Virus record (IMG/VR): IMGVR_UViG_3300024262_006558
Location: 124,001-188,000 of that record
Length of the DNA stretch: 64,000 bases
Reading direction: 5' to 3' (one strand)
The translations under genes and the position numbers were made by a program. Under the pieces are notes generated by a model. The model searched no databases and was not told where the DNA came from. It saw only the letters and a list, made by a program, of their open reading frames with translations. Position 1 is the stretch's first letter, and every line of letters starts with the position of its first letter. This document shows, in pieces, positions 16,319 to 50,132 of this stretch.

Positions 16319-16530
16319 GAATACCTATAGCATCTAAAAATATAAAATCTGCAGCCTATGATCAACCCAATCTAACTGCAGAGATAGAATTCATTAATGG
16401 CAATGTATACCAATACTACCCGTTTTATGAAAATCAATGGGATGAATTAATTAAATCTGCAAGTAAAGGTAATTGGTTTAACAAAAATGTTAGATCTAAC
16501 AAGTCTATTGTTTGTAAAAAGATTAAATAA
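16312..16530 (+). CDS. KTSC domain protein
   Basis: SKNIKSAAYD...EIEFINGNVYQY...SASKGNWFNKNVR. Confidence 0.9.
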   Translation: MVRIPIASKNIKSAAYDQPNLTAEIEFINGNVYQYYPFYENQWDELIKSASKGNWFNKNVRSNKSIVCKKIK

Positions 16531-19500
16531 TGAACGAAAAGATATTACTAGAGGAAACACGTTACACAACCAGGTTTACAGCTTTTGCAACAAATATAGA
16601 TGAGAATTCATCTACATTTCAGTCTGGAGTTGATGCTGGAATGGTTCCTGCCTATCTTACATTTGACCCTAATGGAATTGCTCAAAACATTGTTAAATTT
16701 TCTGGAGGAACAATTCTATATAGAACTAATAAAAATACTTTTATACCAATAGATGATGCATCCATAGACTATGTCTCTGGTTATACATGGTCAACTGATT
16801 TACCTAGTCAATTACCTCCAGCTAATAAAGATAATCCAGGAATTGGAAGTAAGTATTATAACAAATTTCATAAAGTAGCAGATTATCTATCAAGCGGCAG
16901 ATCCCAAACTCATGTTATCAGAGAAGAAGTTCCAACTCAAGACTATATTGTTAACATAGGTTTAGAAAGGTCATTCGATGCACTGGACACGCTGAGTGTG
17001 TACAATAGTATGGAGAATGGTATACCTAGCCAAGAGTCTAATACTGGCGTTGTATTTGGAAGGTTGGTAGCAAATCAAAAAATCATAGACAGAAATGGTA
17101 ATGCGGTTAAAATACCATTATCGAATGTCCCCATAGGTATATTCCAAGCTTCTGAGGAGTTCCCAACAGCGAACTCCACAGATGATAATGGTAACAGGAT
17201 TCAAATGAATTTTTTAAACAACGACCCTGAAGCTAATGAGCAATTTAATTATGTAATTGCTCATGAGGGAACAGATCTTTACTCTACAAACAGGTCAGAT
17301 GTTAAAAGTAAATCTTATGAATTCGATCAGCAATTTCTTTCTAGCAGTGACAATCTAGAGAGTATGCCTGAGCATTATAAGATAGTTACTAAAACAAATG
17401 ACAACGGAGAATTTATTTTATATGACGTACCTACCAGTACTCAAATTTTATTCTTTGAAGTAGATCTTCTAAAGCAAGGGATGACCAAGGAAGAAGTTAA
17501 GTTAAATTTTTTCCCTTACCCTACAGTAAGCGAGCCTAATGTAGATAGTGTACCACATTTTTTCTTCAGACAATTTCCATTGGATGTTCTACCTGCATGG
17601 GGAGATCTGCAAACTGGATATACTGAAGTAAATGTAAGCGTTAATCTAGATCTCAGGAAATGGGCTACTTACTTTTTTCCACCAGTATCTTTAGATGGGC
17701 AAACTTTTAAAGAATTACAAGACGAGGGAGTTGTAGCTAAGATGGAGATTGAGATTAGAGATATGACTAGTCCAGACTTTAGTTTAACACCAGTTTCGCT
17801 TGTTGAAATAGCAGATCCTTTAAATAGAAATACAACACAAGAATTGGATTGGAACAATGAATTGGTTCAATCTAAAGGGGTAGCTGAATTTAGGGAAGAT
17901 GACTTTTCTATACTTAAGCTACCAGCTAACATCTATAATCCTAACGGGATTAGCACTTCTGAATACGATAAAAAAAACATAGCAGAAGCTCAGCGATTTG
18001 AATATTCTCAAACTAAAGGCTCCTGGCATGCTGGTTACCAGATGAATGTTAAAACAAATATTAATGAAGAATGGTTTAGAGCTACTGGGTTAGATAATAC
18101 GCCGAGACCTCCAATAAGAAGAACTTTTAGCATTCCTGAAAACTTGAATAGAGCTCATATAAATTTAATAAGAAGAATAAGGCCTGATGTTGACCGCGCT
18201 TTCCCAGCAGATATTAATGTGGCTAGATGGTATATTTACCAAGGCGTAAAGGAGTTTGATGAGGCAACTATTGAACTAATAGCTACACAGCCTATTCAAA
18301 CAGATTTAAATGTAGCAGCAGCAAATTATATAAGAGTAGTTAGACCTGATATTAATAGCGCTACAACAGATGGAGTAAAATTATGGTATGTCATCGATGG
18401 TATAAAAGAGTTAAGTGATGAGAATTTGAATAGAATTAGGGAATTAGCTGTAACTACAGACAGTTTAACTAGAGACCATTTTCATTTAAATAGAAACAAT
18501 TCAGAGTCTGTAAAAAATACAGAAGCTGAAGGTGTTATAAATTTTTTCCCTTATGAAAGGCCGTGGGATGAATTATATCCAGAGCCAATAAAAATACCTA
18601 GAGTCCCAAGAGTTAGAAACCCTAGATGGAGAGGGGCATATAATGGAGACCCTAATATTTATATACCTAAATATTTAGACGGTGATCTAATAGGTCTCCC
18701 TGACGCTAATGTGGAAGCTGGAGGCTGGGGCTTGGAATTAAAGCCAGTAACTGGAACTAAATATGCGGGCTTATTTTCAAAAAGAGCTACTAAAAATTTT
18801 GTATACAAATATGAGGGTAACGCGTCAAGCACGCTTACATCATACGCAAATGGATACAGCCCTACACAGGATATTGAAGCCCTCTCGTCAGTTTTAGATG
18901 GGGAAAACTACCAAAGAGTAGAATGTGGACATGCCTATTTCATGAGAGTTGAAGGTTGGCCTGGAGCTTTGCATGGCCCCGTTTTTGATAGGATGTTTGC
19001 CGATAATTCCTATGGATCCTTAAACCGTATTGTAGGTTCATATCGTAGTCCAGACTTAAAAACTAGTGTTAAAGCTGGAAGTGATTCACCGAAAAAAGAA
19101 GGCGACATTCAAATTTTTAAAATTGTAAATCCTGATCCAGAAAACATATATAGCCAAGACCCTATAGTGACGCCTAGTTTTATAACAATAGGCACTGAGC
19201 AGATATGGAGAAGAAGGGATGAGGATAATGACAAACTGAAGATGGGGTACGCAATAAATAATGAAAACGGACAAGGTAAAGCGGCTTACATGTACCCTCA
19301 CTTTTCTGACAAGGGAAACTTTTTCTCTAGATTCACTATAGAAATACAAAATGTAGGTCAAAAAACAGTTAGAGACCCATTTAGAGAGGGGGCTAAGCTA
19401 AGATCTGGCGAATCTTCTGAATTCCTAGTTCAAATGGAATCAAATACCACTATAGGGGATGTAGATTTTCAATTTTCAGCTCGTGACAACAGAATGAGGT

Positions 19501-43694: not shown

Positions 43695-44024
43695 ATGCAA
43701 AAGGAATTTATTTTATGTGCTGCAATAGATTATGACGGTACCATTGTCTGCGGACACAGACATGGTGACTGCTATGATGTACTAAAATCATTGATAGGAG
43801 AGATTGATGCAGATAAACTTCCAGCTAGAGACAAGCAAGGATTCTTAACTTCTGAAAACAGATACGTTGGACGAGAGGAAGCTTGGGTTATAGCAAAAGA
43901 GAGAAAGCAGGTCGTTCATGGCCTTAAGGCAAGCGATCGAGATAATGATGAATTAGATGAATTAGACAAGCATTTAGGCATAAAGAAGCCTGTGTCTATT
44001 CTTATATCAGAAAATTTATATTAA
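43695..44024 (+). CDS. Conserved phage hypothetical protein
   Basis: ILCAAI..GHRHGDC..QGFLTSENRYVGREEA..LISENLY motif set. Confidence 0.65.
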   Translation: MQKEFILCAAIDYDGTIVCGHRHGDCYDVLKSLIGEIDADKLPARDKQGFLTSENRYVGREEAWVIAKERKQVVHGLKASDRDNDELDELDKHLGIKKPVSILISENLY

Positions 44025-44540: not shown

Positions 44541-44993
44541 CTACTCAATAATACAACATGTAGGTTTAATAGTAAGAGTGATATAGCGCACGTCACTACT
44601 TGAATAATCTAATTCGCCAAAATTAACCTTAACACTCTCAACTACAATCACAAAGGTTTCAATAACTACCCCAGTCGGATCAAGGCTTGACATTCTAATA
44701 GTAAACATTTCTAACTCACCATTCAATTTCCTATCTTTACAGTAATCAATTAAATTAATCATAGATGAGCTTGTTGATATTCCATGCCCATATAAATCAA
44801 TAATATCTATGCTCATCTCTTCCCAAGACATATTTTGCAAATTGTAGTGAGGTAAATCAGCTCTCTGAACAGCAAACTCTGGAATATTAAAATGTTCATC
44901 AAATCTTAATGAGAATCTATTCCTTCTCATTGGCTCTTCTATAGGAGTAGCGATCAATTTTTTATTATATGCGTGATAAAACTTTTTCCTCAT
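44541..44993 (-). CDS. MRKKFYHAY-leader tail-tube-like protein (gp19-like, internally shortened)
   Basis: EPMRRNRF, W, LDPTGVVIETF and VNFGELDYSSSDVRYITLTI match T4-gp19-type tube proteins. Confidence 0.75.
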   Translation of the reverse strand: MRKKFYHAYNKKLIATPIEEPMRRNRFSLRFDEHFNIPEFAVQRADLPHYNLQNMSWEEMSIDIIDLYGHGISTSSSMINLIDYCKDRKLNGELEMFTIRMSSLDPTGVVIETFVIVVESVKVNFGELDYSSSDVRYITLTIKPTCCIIE

Positions 44994-45923: not shown

Positions 45924-46118
45924 ATGAGAAAGAAGTTTTACCACGCATTTAAAAAACATAAAATAATATTTATGTCACCTGGAATATACACCAGGGAAAT
46001 AGATAGGTCTTTTGTGATGGTGTCAGGAGCAACTAATTCAAATTTTATAGCAGGTATTGATCCAGCCGTTAAGTCTCCAAGAATTGATATGCTAAAGGTT
46101 TTTGGATCAGCATCATGA
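45924..46118 (+). CDS. MRKKFYHAF-leader peptide carrying a tail-sheath N-terminal motif
   Basis: IFMSPGIYTREIDRSFV equals the SPGVYxREID N-terminal arm of gp18-type sheath proteins. Confidence 0.7.
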   Translation: MRKKFYHAFKKHKIIFMSPGIYTREIDRSFVMVSGATNSNFIAGIDPAVKSPRIDMLKVFGSAS

Positions 46119-46267
46119 GAAAACGGTTCTATCACGCATATAAAAAGAAAAGTATGGCTCAAAAGTTTTTAGAGCTTAGTAATATTATTCATGAGAGAGC
46201 TGTGAGAGGTTCAGCGAACTTTATAATAACTAGCACGGCTATGGCAAATAAAATAAAAAAAATATGA
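46115..46267 (+). CDS. MRKRFYHAY-leader peptide (50 aa, not in ORF track) carrying a major-capsid-like segment
   Basis: MRKRFYHAYKKKSMAQKFLELSNIIHERAVRGSANFIITSTAMANKIKKI; ATGA overlaps at both ends; cf. gp23-type I...T.RG.gNFII.S. Confidence 0.7.
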   Translation: MRKRFYHAYKKKSMAQKFLELSNIIHERAVRGSANFIITSTAMANKIKKI

Positions 46268-46515
46268 GAAAAAACTTCTACCATTCTTATAACGAATTCA
46301 AATACCCTACTGTAGAATTAGGAGAAACTGTTTTTTCGATAATAGATAACTGCGATTATACCATGACCTACACCATGGATACATGGAGTGATTCATGCTC
46401 AGGTCTAGATAGTGACATATCCAGCATTGAGTACAGGCTTAAGACAGCTGAAGAAACTATCGATAGATTACTTGTCGAGATGAAAGAGATGAAAGATCAA
46501 ATGCAAAAACCATAA
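46264..46515 (+). CDS. MRKNFYHSY-leader protein with C-terminal coiled coil
   Basis: 83 aa, ATGA-coupled to the previous family member. Confidence 0.7.
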   Translation: MRKNFYHSYNEFKYPTVELGETVFSIIDNCDYTMTYTMDTWSDSCSGLDSDISSIEYRLKTAEETIDRLLVEMKEMKDQMQKP

Positions 46516-46569
46516 AAGAGTTTAATTTCAATTATAATCTTATTAGATTTTACATAAATGATAGAAACT

Positions 46570-46773
46570 ATGGCGGAGAATGAGAACAAGAACATTCTAG
46601 ATCTTTTGCTCGATATTAAAGAACTAACGGATACAATTCAACCAGATGCAGAAAAAACCCTCAAAGGTAATAAAACGGCTGGCATTAGATTGAGAAAGCA
46701 GATGCAAGAAATAAAAAGACTTTGTCAAGATGTGAGAGACAAAGTTCAAGTTAGTAAAAATGTTACAGCTTAA
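46570..46773 (+). CDS. Hc1-like histone H1 family protein
   Basis: DAEKTLKGNKTAGIRLRKQMQEIK...R matches the GNKAAG.R.RK core of Hc1/Bacteroidota histone-H1-like proteins. Confidence 0.8.
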   Translation: MAENENKNILDLLLDIKELTDTIQPDAEKTLKGNKTAGIRLRKQMQEIKRLCQDVRDKVQVSKNVTA

Positions 46774-47174: not shown

Positions 47175-50132
47175 ATGGCTAAGAAAAACAAATATAAAGA
47201 TAGCGTAGTTCATATAAAGAAATTAAAGACAAATTATAGACTAACTTATGATTTTCTCAAATCTCTTACAGAATATATAAAATCATTTCCTAAAGAACAT
47301 TGGTCTATTCACAAAGAGCAGGTCATGGTGGGCGGGGAACTTAAACAGCAATGGTCCAGAGATATATCTGAATTCAAAATGGTTGATGTATTAGCGTTCC
47401 TAGTCGACAACTCAATCCCATTCAAATTTAGTAAATCCATAACAGAAAGAGAATTAAATGTTTTACGTAAAGAATATTTAGATCGACAGAATCGATTGAA
47501 AGATGCGCTTAGGGAGAAGTTAGATGGCATTGACATAAAAGGTATGGATTTCAGCTTTATGAAAATACAGCCTTATGAGTACCAACAACAAGCTGTTCGA
47601 TTCTTTGAGCTTAATGGAGGTATAGGGCTATTAGGGGATGCTCCAGGTGTAGGCAAGGAAATGCCTTTAGACACACCTATCCCCACTCCAGAAGGTTGGA
47701 AAACAATGGGGGATATGACGGTTGGTCAAAAGGTTTTTTCTAGAGATGGTGAAGTTTATAAAGTGAGAGGAGTGTATCCTCAAGGATCTAAAGATGTTTA
47801 TAAAATAACCTTCAATGATGGTAGCTCTACTAAATGTGGTTTAGATCACATTTGGACTGTTAGAGATAAAAATAGAAAGCGCAGAAATAAAGGGTGGACT
47901 ACAAAAACGATAGGTGATCTATTGGATAGCGGTTTAAAATATAACTTAGACGCCTCTAGAAAGTTATCTGGTAGAAAAGCTGCTCTCAAATGGGAGATAC
48001 CCACAACTAAACCAGTAAATTATAATAAGAAAAACTTATCAATAGACCCTTATATTTTAGGAGCTTTGATTGGAGATGGAAGTTTGACGGGATCATGTCC
48101 AGCTGTTTCCATACCAAATTTCCAAAAAGAAATCAAAGAAGAGATGGTTTCTAGATTAGATGAAGGGTATCATATGAGAAAGAATGATTATCCAAATTGC
48201 CCACAATATTACATCTCTCAAAAAGGATGGGGTGGACAAAGCAAAAAAAACAAATATCAACAAGAGGTTCTAAGTTTAAAATTAAACGTAAAATCTAGGG
48301 ATAAATTTATACCAAAAACCTATTTATTGGGATCTATAGATCAAAGAATTGATCTACTGAAAGGATTAATGGATAGTGATGGTAGTTGCGATAAAAATAG
48401 ATCAAATTATCACACTACATCTAAACGTTTGTCAATGGACGTTGTAGAATTAGTTCAGTCGCTAGGAGGCGTTGCAAAAGTTAACATCTATGATAGGTCT
48501 GCTGAAGGGAAGCCGACTGAATACAGAGTTAGGGTTAATGTTAATTTTTGCCCTTTTAATTTATCAGAAAAATCTAAACAGTGGAATCCAATAAAAACTG
48601 TTGAATCTAAATTAATAGAATCAATTGAAAAAGAGGCCTCTGAACAGCAGCAGTGTATTTCCGTAGATTCTCCAGACAACACTTACTTAACTGAAAGTTA
48701 TATTGTGACACACAATACCTGCTCGGCTTTTGCATATGCAGCTAAGCATCAGTATAAAACATTGATAATTTGTCCAGCCTCACTTGCTTTGAACTGGAAA
48801 AATGAAATAGTTAAGTTTACAAATGAAAAGGCTCACGTATACAAATACAAACCCACTAAAAAAAGCGGAAAGGTAAACTACGCAAAAGAAGACTCACTTT
48901 TCCATGTAATAAACTACGAATCACTTGATACCTATTTTAAATTTGAATACTCACATAAGTGTAGTAATTCAAATTGTAAATATGAAGAAGTATCTTTGGT
49001 TAAAAAATTTAAAGAGTGCCCTAGTTGCTTTAGTCCAAAAAGCGTTAAAAGCAGAAAAAAAGAACTTCTTGCTTTCGAAGCTAAAGATGGAAGCTTTATT
49101 AATATAGATGATTATGATTTAGTGGTTCTAGATGAGGCTCACTATATCAAGAACGATCAGGCTGAGAGAACTAAGTTATGCATTAAAGCATTAGGAGATA
49201 TCCCTAGAAAACTATTAGTTACTGGTACAGCAATAAAAAGTAAACCTATTGAGTTTTTCACTCTTGTTAACTTTCTATTCCCTGAGGAGTGGAAGAGTAG
49301 GCATCACTTTGGGGTAAGATATTGTGCTGGACATGAATCCAACTTTGGCTGGGATTATAATGGAGCCTCACATATACATGAGTTGTATGAGAGAATGTCA
49401 CCTTTTACTTTAAGAAGATTGAAGCAAGATGTATTAAGTCACTTGCCTCCAAAGACAAGATGGAATATACCAATTCAACTCACTCCAGCAGAAGCTAGAG
49501 AATACAAGAAAATAGAGCAGGAAACTATTACAATACTTTCCAATGGTGAAGCTATTGAAAAAAATCATCTTACGGTTCTTTTGGATTTAAAAAGCTTTAT
49601 TGCTGATATAAAATTAGATAGAGCCCTATCTCAAGTGCAAGACATTGTTGAAGGTGGTGAGAAAGTTGTTCTTATGTCTGAGTTTAGAAAATCAGCAGAG
49701 GGAGTTAAAGAGCATTTTGGAAAAAGCTGTGTAATGGTTCATGGTGGAGTTAGTAAAGAAGAACGAGATAATGCTGTTCACGCCTTCATGACGGACCCTA
49801 AGATAAAAGTGTTCAGCGGAACTATTATGGCTGCAGGAGTAGGGCTTACATTAACCTCATCTAGCACATTAGGATTTCTAGGATCAGCTTGGACTCCAGC
49901 AGATATGACTCAAGCGGAGGATCGTGTACACAGAGCGTCCACCACCTCAGATAAAGTTCATATTATAAAATGGATTTGTGAAGACACGATCGATGAAGAT
50001 ATTGAAGCCCTCTTAGAAGAGAAAGGGAAAATAGTAAACAAAGCCTTAGATAATACAAGTTCAATTGAAAGCGCTGAGGTTCTAAGTGGAAATATACAAA
50101 ATCAAATAATCGCTAGATTACTGAATGGATAG
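47175..50132 (+). CDS. SNF2/SWI2-family helicase with intein and Zn-ribbon insert
   Basis: PYEYQQQAV, GDAPGVGK[intein]T, IICPASL, INYE, LDEAHYIKN, VTGT, RRLKQDV, GVGLTL and QAEDRVHR. Confidence 0.93.
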   Translation: MAKKNKYKDSVVHIKKLKTNYRLTYDFLKSLTEYIKSFPKEHWSIHKEQVMVGGELKQQWSRDISEFKMVDVLAFLVDNSIPFKFSKSITERELNVLRKEYLDRQNRLKDALREKLDGIDIKGMDFSFMKIQPYEYQQQAVRFFELNGGIGLLGDAPGVGKEMPLDTPIPTPEGWKTMGDMTVGQKVFSRDGEVYKVRGVYPQGSKDVYKITFNDGSSTKCGLDHIWTVRDKNRKRRNKGWTTKTIGDLLDSGLKYNLDASRKLSGRKAALKWEIPTTKPVNYNKKNLSIDPYILGALIGDGSLTGSCPAVSIPNFQKEIKEEMVSRLDEGYHMRKNDYPNCPQYYISQKGWGGQSKKNKYQQEVLSLKLNVKSRDKFIPKTYLLGSIDQRIDLLKGLMDSDGSCDKNRSNYHTTSKRLSMDVVELVQSLGGVAKVNIYDRSAEGKPTEYRVRVNVNFCPFNLSEKSKQWNPIKTVESKLIESIEKEASEQQQCISVDSPDNTYLTESYIVTHNTCSAFAYAAKHQYKTLIICPASLALNWKNEIVKFTNEKAHVYKYKPTKKSGKVNYAKEDSLFHVINYESLDTYFKFEYSHKCSNSNCKYEEVSLVKKFKECPSCFSPKSVKSRKKELLAFEAKDGSFINIDDYDLVVLDEAHYIKNDQAERTKLCIKALGDIPRKLLVTGTAIKSKPIEFFTLVNFLFPEEWKSRHHFGVRYCAGHESNFGWDYNGASHIHELYERMSPFTLRRLKQDVLSHLPPKTRWNIPIQLTPAEAREYKKIEQETITILSNGEAIEKNHLTVLLDLKSFIADIKLDRALSQVQDIVEGGEKVVLMSEFRKSAEGVKEHFGKSCVMVHGGVSKEERDNAVHAFMTDPKIKVFSGTIMAAGVGLTLTSSSTLGFLGSAWTPADMTQAEDRVHRASTTSDKVHIIKWICEDTIDEDIEALLEEKGKIVNKALDNTSSIESAEVLSGNIQNQIIARLLNG
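47658..48716 (+). mobile_element. Class-3-type intein with LAGLIDADG endonuclease in the helicase P-loop (353 aa)
   Basis: Inserted at GK|T; starts EMPLDTPIPTPEGW; DHIW, QCISV and IVTHN give the WCT signature; LGALIGDGS and LKGLMDSDGS. Confidence 0.9.

Follow-up and report, generated by a model that had tools for sequence, protein, structure and literature searches.

A tagged 64-residue ORF of a jumbo phage resembles a free-standing tail-sheath arm

Why should a jumbo phage encode, 78 kb away from its intact sheath gene, a short ORF consisting of little more than an address-like peptide and the strand that tail-sheath subunits use to lock onto each other? To address this question we analysed a window of 64,000 nucleotides (bases 124001–188000 of a single 388,594-bp contig with 33.9% G+C, here termed genome G000) derived from a metagenomic jumbo phage of a subsurface sample; the same gene is on record on a JGI contig of 494,080 bp. 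The phage has a T4-type capsid protein, sheath, tube, prohead protease and large terminase, and the nearest cultured capsid protein, that of Flavobacterium phage immuto, is only 34% identical. A first-pass annotation had described the ORF as an isolated sheath N-terminal arm behind a tag and had inferred that a free arm could occupy the handshake site and block polymerisation of a phage tail or a host contractile injection system. The observation was confirmed by our analysis: the ORF consists of the tag MRKKFYHAFKKHKIIF, followed by MSPGIYTREIDRSFV, a 33-residue tail and TGA (Table 1). A public gene caller had called the ORF from Met17 as a protein of 48 aa. The two ORFs that follow start with the same tag and overlap by ATGA, a fourth tagged ORF lies on the opposite strand, and the DNA pattern of the tag occurs four times in the window against 0.07 expected.

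Table 1. Location of the features described in the text. Window positions refer to the 64,000-nucleotide stretch; G001 and G002 are related phage genomes; L numbers in the last column denote extracted stretches with their own numbering.
Feature	Location	Strand	Size	Position in extracted stretch
Tagged sheath-arm ORF (ATG at 45924, TGA at 46116-46118)	window 45924-46118	+	64 aa
N-terminal tag, residues 1-16, core MRKxFY	window 45924-45971	+	16 aa
Arm core, residues 14-31, IIFMSPGIYTREIDRSFV, copy of sheath residues about 3-20	window 45963-46016	+	18 aa
Tail	window 46017-46115	+	33 aa
Second tagged ORF, major-capsid-protein piece (RGSANFII region)	window 46115-46267	+	50 aa
Third tagged ORF	window 46264-46515	+	83 aa
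Tagged short tail-tube paralog	window 44541-44993	-	150 aa
Histone H1-like Hc1 protein, directly downstream of the tagged trio	window 46558-46773
T4_Y16D-family ORF, upstream	window 43695-44024
SNF2-type helicase with intein-like insert	window 47175-50132		985 aa
Intact sheath gene	G000 90077-92458		793 aa
First tandem array of tagged ORFs	G000 223268-229682			L003:1268-7682
Second tandem array of tagged ORFs	G000 371573-373615			L004:2573-4615
Tagged terminase ATPase N-domain	G000 337373-338092		239 aa	L005:1373-2089
Terminase N-domain counterpart, motif at the C-terminus	G002 472490-473170
dCMP-deaminase-like protein with capsid segment	G001 16446-17321		291 aa	within L134
GT2 glycosyltransferase with arm-like extension	G001 179372-180172			L160:3372-4169
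ORF ending in an arm-like peptide	G002 448526-449026		166 aa	L125:8526-9023
M28-family peptidase	G000 329572-330561			L153:8575-9561
Aminoacyl-tRNA synthetase gene	G000			L153:11279-12385
Second aminoacyl-tRNA synthetase gene	G000 334606-336183
Cluster of repeat-containing ORFs	G000 about 271200-280900	both
Repeated DNA element, about 25 copies	G001 about 317600-349800	-

To determine whether the likeness to the sheath arm exceeds chance, a profile was built from the first 75 residues of nine relatives' sheath proteins, leaving out the phage's own, and searched against all 1524 ORFs of 40 aa or more in the genome. Only the true sheath and the tagged ORF were hit (E 2.2e-4, residues 14–31), the next best hit having an E-value of 2.7. 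The reverse profile, built from the four arm ORFs (see below), found sheath residues 3–25 as the best other hit in three genomes, G000, G001 and G002 (E 2e-4 to 1.6e-5), and 11 of 13 weak tblastn hits in GenBank phages fell on annotated sheath N-termini. The significant likeness covers about 18 residues; the tail is alignable with one homologue (L130, see below) and loosely with sheath residues 20–60, and outside the arm the ORF resembles only its own small-ORF homologues. PHROG and Pfam scans of the ORF found no family, and the ESM Atlas gave no usable hit and a model pLDDT of 0.30. Word and pattern searches for close relatives returned only the ORF itself, no near-DNA match and no arm-ORF homologue were found in GenBank phages, and a degenerate arm pattern searched in IMG/VR returned only full-length sheaths.

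Next, we asked whether the ORF is the start of a broken sheath gene, a possibility that the first-pass annotation had named as refuting its view. The sheath gene is intact, a tblastn search with it found nothing but the 13-residue arm within 5 kb of the ORF, and no small ORF significantly matched the sheath C-terminus, so that both a frameshifted sheath gene and an accompanying mimic of the C-terminal arm were rejected. Relatives keep the truncation. A 518,809-bp relative (G002, capsid protein 67% identical) has a 66-aa ORF reading a motif SRIVIVEKIKK, then NIF-ISPGVYTIELD and a short tail, and two further uncultured phages, L130 and L129, have ORFs of 95 and 96 aa of the same build, always behind the equivalent motif, with two arms in tandem in the L129 protein. 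The L130 ORF hits the G000 ORF at E 1.2e-5 (tblastn, 40% over 42 residues including the tail) but not the real sheath; these are therefore orthologues of each other and not independent sheath fragments. In G002, L129 and L130 the arm ORF directly follows a 'mini-MCP' gene within a conserved cluster, whereas in G000 the mini-MCP pieces lie in the second tandem array. A sequencing run from another metagenome (X3) holds a roughly 90% identical relative, whose contig spans the ORF with no indels in the tag and arm but with deletions of 3, 6, 2, 1 and 3 nt (15 together) and one 30-nt insertion in the tail, so that the ORF stays in frame in sum. The family is known from only these five metagenomic phages; no arm ORF was found in the relatives G001 (capsid protein 73% identical, and thus closer than G002) and G003, which build the same kind of tail.

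The tag proved to be a genome-wide peptide motif, a point that the first-pass annotation had missed. Thirty-eight listed small ORFs of G000 begin with or carry [M/V/L/I]RKxF[YF] at their N-terminus, including the two tandem arrays, the first with about 18 otherwise unrelated ORFs, many overlapping by ATGA, and the second with eight ORFs that start right after a tRNA-Leu gene and hold capsid-protein pieces in capsid order. RKxF[YF] occurs 50 times in open frames against 9 for the reversed pattern, with about 40 of those copies at the very N-terminus. Upstream DNA is not conserved, Arg and Lys codons in the tag follow genome usage, and Phe and Tyr use both codons freely with a mild lean to C-ending ones, indicating that conservation is at the peptide level; an RNA-level reading was therefore rejected, and no Rfam family lies in 40–50 kb. 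With the tag removed, the tagged ORFs are not detectably alike, and the tag is thus a shared label on diverse cargo. The T4 late promoter TATAAATA was not enriched (112 found against 111 expected), a scan for sigma-70 promoters and terminators was uninformative, and no RNA run was found to hold the sequence.

G002 has only five copies of MRKxFY but 132 copies of R-x-[VIL]-[ILV]-x-E-K (RxVLxEK) in open frames, against 5 for the reversed pattern and 2–4 for charge-swapped controls, and as its Arg is encoded by both AGA and CGN this too is a peptide-level motif. In the orthologous arm ORFs and tube paralogs the two spellings occupy the same position (MRKKFYHAFKK against SRIVIVEKIKK), and we therefore read them as homologous, lineage-specific versions of one motif. 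In G002 the motif is N-terminal in 33 ORFs, internal in 50 and within 12 residues of the C-terminus in 49; G001 has neither spelling. Among the genes of G000, 35 have a match in G002 but none in G001, yet no clear reader of the motif emerged. An M28-family peptidase, present in the motif-bearing G000 and G002 but without a match in G001, is only a lead; two aminoacyl-tRNA synthetase genes, one PheRS alpha-like by Pfam and the second resembling a class I Glu/Gln-type enzyme by eye, show the same distribution.

Moreover, the arm ORF is one of a set of tagged mini-copies of virion proteins, a point that the first-pass annotation had missed. When a profile of 70 capsid proteins was searched against all G000 ORFs, the five best non-MCP hits were all tagged ORFs, covering profile positions 15–41, 77–117, 382–421 (E 0.14), 441–468 and 529–575. 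The 50-aa ORF next to the arm ORF is one of them (positions 441–468, E 2.5e-3; Pfam Gp23 is its top hit at E 0.055), and its RGSANFII motif is kept as RGPANFII in the X3 relative although the surrounding DNA has diverged. A tagged 239-aa ORF is a terminase ATPase N-domain (Pfam Terminase_6N, 5e-7), and the tagged 150-aa ORF of the window is a tube paralog (PHROG 4542 at 5e-8, own tube protein at 8e-12) lacking the long hairpin of the main tube protein. This paralog family has 812 members in metagenomes, and 10 of 149 cluster representatives carry RxVLxEK in a terminal extension, against one for the reversed control. The suspected likeness of the 83-aa and of an 81-aa tagged ORF to the tube N-terminus was not significant. 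G002 has the same set, all with its own motif, and its tagged tube paralog lies between baseplate-like genes. The mini-MCP is a family of about 190-aa proteins in at least ten metagenomic clusters, with the motif at both ends, for which AlphaFold2 gave no usable fold (pLDDT 50). G001 lacks the motif but still has capsid-protein pieces, one of them fused to a dCMP-deaminase-like enzyme whose C-terminal part matches capsid-profile positions 412–480 (E 1.6e-19).

Arm-like peptides may also be attached to larger proteins in relatives, which points as much to docking as to blocking. A family-2 glycosyltransferase of G001 (Pfam PF00535, 4e-17) has a 25-residue N-terminal extension that reads like the arm (SPIFVSPGFSSVEYD; arm HMM E 0.008), and a 166-aa ORF of G002 ends in a poly-Lys linker followed by TVFISPDITTRESD, 10 of 14 residues being identical to sheath residues 3–16, although this case is not significant by HMM. 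Elsewhere in the window and the genomes compared, the Hc1 protein downstream of the tagged trio was assigned by Pfam (PF07432, 6e-16), the 985-aa helicase matched SNF2-rel_dom, Helicase_C and, weakly, LAGLIDADG_3 in the public gene table, G000 contains a dense cluster of mutually similar ORFs with WFLNGK.HREDGPA-type repeats, and G001 contains a repeated DNA element, probably an intergenic repeat, that translates as ..GYEYIKQI.KSG.. in short spurious frames.

Binding was examined only by co-folding the ORF with the phage's own sheath lacking its arm (residues 21–793). The ipSAE score was 0.42 and that of the best of three controls 0.01, which the method itself rates as weak support: the mark was reached by 51 of 78 solved complexes and 2 of 108 mismatched pairs, but at 0.60 or under it was reached by only 5 of those 78 solved complexes and by all 4 mismatches that passed (of 180). 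The runs agreed in at least 80% of contacts and partner pLDDT was 47; the result could reflect memory of sheath-sheath complexes. Alone, the peptide has no confident predicted fold, as expected for a strand that folds on binding.

Taken together, the interpretation offered by the first-pass annotation is partly supported: the isolated arm, the tag, the absence of a frameshifted sheath gene and the conserved truncation hold, sheath binding has only weak model support, and neither a block of polymerisation nor a rival phage or host injection system as the target has been shown. It is established that the sheath N-terminus pairs with a neighbour's C-terminus and that together they augment the C-terminal-domain (CTD) sheet of the ring below (PMC10457771). 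A protein that keeps only this strand under selection most plausibly uses it for the same contact. Our tentative explanation is that the ORF encodes a real, accessory small protein of a conserved family, built of the short shared motif, a linker, one or two copies of the sheath donor strand and a variable tail, and unfolded on its own, whose arm would insert as a beta-strand into the acceptor sheet of a sheath subunit, the site that normally takes the N-terminal arm of the next subunit, and would there cap or compete with ring-on-ring polymerisation beside sister proteins presenting segments of the capsid protein, the terminase ATPase domain and a tube-like fold. The shared motif would most likely be a docking or addressing peptide read by one common partner that could serve timing, turnover or localisation; capsid targeting, a degron and chaperone docking are all conceivable. 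What the analysis demonstrates is the gene family, the arm homology, the motif and the patchy, fast evolution, whereas the binding site, the capping effect, the role of the motif and the nature of the target (own sheath, a rival's or a host tailocin or T6SS) are inferred from sequence and a weak model. A regulatory or conflict role is favoured over a core structural one by the accessory, patchy and fast-evolving nature of the gene, its location among small ORFs away from the tail genes and its company of mimics of other polymerising proteins. However, the arm is nearly as close to the phage's own sheath arm as to any other and too conserved to show specificity, so that a pure inhibitor would also poison its producer unless timed or removed, and the motif also sits on about 40–130 proteins with no structural likeness. 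If the arm peptide does bind the handshake site, it would be the first natural free-standing ligand of the sheath polymerisation interface that we know of, and a ready-made probe or inhibitor for contractile tails, tailocins and related injection machines. The wider pattern, in which virion-protein segments are reused as portable modules under a motif found on up to 132 proteins of one phage, points to an unrecognised layer of organisation in huge phages, a common reader of many small proteins; it gives testable handles for a large share of their 'hypothetical' small ORFs and warns annotators that short Gp23, terminase and sheath hits in such genomes are not pseudogenes. Literature searches found no described free sheath-arm protein and no comparable tag.

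Among the alternatives, the one that survives best, although we consider it unlikely, is that the arm is a docking peptide or structural cap that fastens its bearer to free acceptor sites of a sheath ring (the ring that receives no arms from a further ring) or to the gp25-like initiator, the 64-aa protein being a small virion or assembly component that completes the last handshake sheet. The tail terminator C-terminus fills the sheath CTD sheet in this way in phage XM1 (PMC10457771), and the attached arms in G001 and G002, the two arms of L129 and the position of the G002 tube paralog are in line with such a role. On the other hand, the gene lies outside the structural module, was not found in G001 and G003, and evolves fast, and the two attached-arm cases are statistically weak. 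About as doubtful is a bolder version of the conflict reading, in which a clade of jumbo T4-like phages carries an 'interface-mimic kit' of small, disordered proteins that each present one conserved assembly segment of a virion protein (sheath donor strand, capsid N-terminal and other segments, terminase ATPase domain, hairpin-less tube) under a lineage-specific tag; the kit would jam the assembly of rival phages or host tail-like machines in the same cell, and the tag would act as a timed handle, for example a latent degron, that spares the producer, the M28 peptidase being a lead for that handle.

Less likely still, the mini-copies could be decoys that present the conserved segments of capsid, terminase, tube and sheath proteins recognised by abortive-infection sensors and occupy those sensors without triggering them. 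The proteins copied (major capsid, large terminase ATPase domain, tube) match classes of phage triggers of bacterial sensors such as CapRel, Lit/Gol, Avs and DSR2, the mini-MCP keeps the region that corresponds to the T4 Gol peptide, the genes are accessory, fast-evolving and patchy, and a DNA methylase sits inside the conserved cluster in three phages. However, no sensor of a sheath N-terminal arm is known to have been described, a free Gol-like peptide activates rather than blocks Lit, and nothing in the data links these ORFs to a defence system. It is similarly unlikely that the motif works like the T4 capsid targeting sequence, so that tagged proteins are packed into the head and injected with the DNA. 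A short N-terminal peptide is shared by many unrelated small proteins in hyperplastic arrays, one of them directly downstream of a tRNA gene, the relatives' spelling ends in [VIL][ILV]xE, which fits the L/I-x-E site of T4-type prohead proteases, and in the G002 mini-MCP a motif copy sits where the capsid protein has its presumed maturation site. Against this, the G000 tag has His, Ile or Phe where relatives have Glu, yet its capsid protein keeps MLQE like that of G002, the motif in G002 is as often internal or C-terminal as N-terminal, 132 cargo proteins would be very many, and no motif copy was listed in the stretch beside the G002 capsid gene where the scaffold gene is expected. Finally, a decaying relic without function, the leftover 5' end of an old duplicate sheath gene that is open by chance, would fit the short length, the lack of a fold, the restriction of sheath similarity to about 18 residues and the differing public start call, but is largely refuted by the same architecture and truncation in phages whose capsid proteins are only 67% identical or less, an arm core kept while the rest diverges, a tag conserved at the peptide level, indels in frame in sum and the absence of other sheath remnants nearby.

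Compared with known systems, the ORF shares one defining feature of contractile sheath proteins (T4 gp18 class; XM1 gp6, R-type pyocin and T6SS sheaths), its core F-x-SPG-[IV]-Y-T-R-E-x-D matching sheath residues 3–20 of this phage and its relatives, but it has no sheath domains, its arm is internal behind a 13–16-aa tag whereas the native arm starts at the N-terminus, and it is encoded far from the tail genes. The tail terminator and sheath initiator (XM1 gp5 and gp15; T4 gp15 and gp25 class) provide a precedent in which a strand from a non-sheath protein completes the handshake sheet of a terminal sheath ring (PMC10457771); the ORF, as judged from the absence of Pfam and PHROG hits and of a stable predicted fold, has no likeness to terminators or gp25, and the strand copied is the sheath's own N-arm. 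With the T4 internal proteins bearing the capsid targeting sequence (IPI, IPII, IPIII, Alt) the tagged ORFs have in common a short N-terminal peptide on diverse small proteins in plastic gene arrays, one of them next to tRNA genes, but the G000 tag lacks the L/I-x-E cleavage site, the homologous motif in relatives is often internal or C-terminal, and the cargo includes copies of virion proteins. In donor-strand complementation of chaperone-usher pili (PapD/FimC class), a free strand occupies the groove that the next subunit's N-terminal extension will fill and thereby controls polymerisation; the inferred action of the arm peptide would be similar, although the proteins and fold are unrelated and no chaperone domain is attached to the strand described here.
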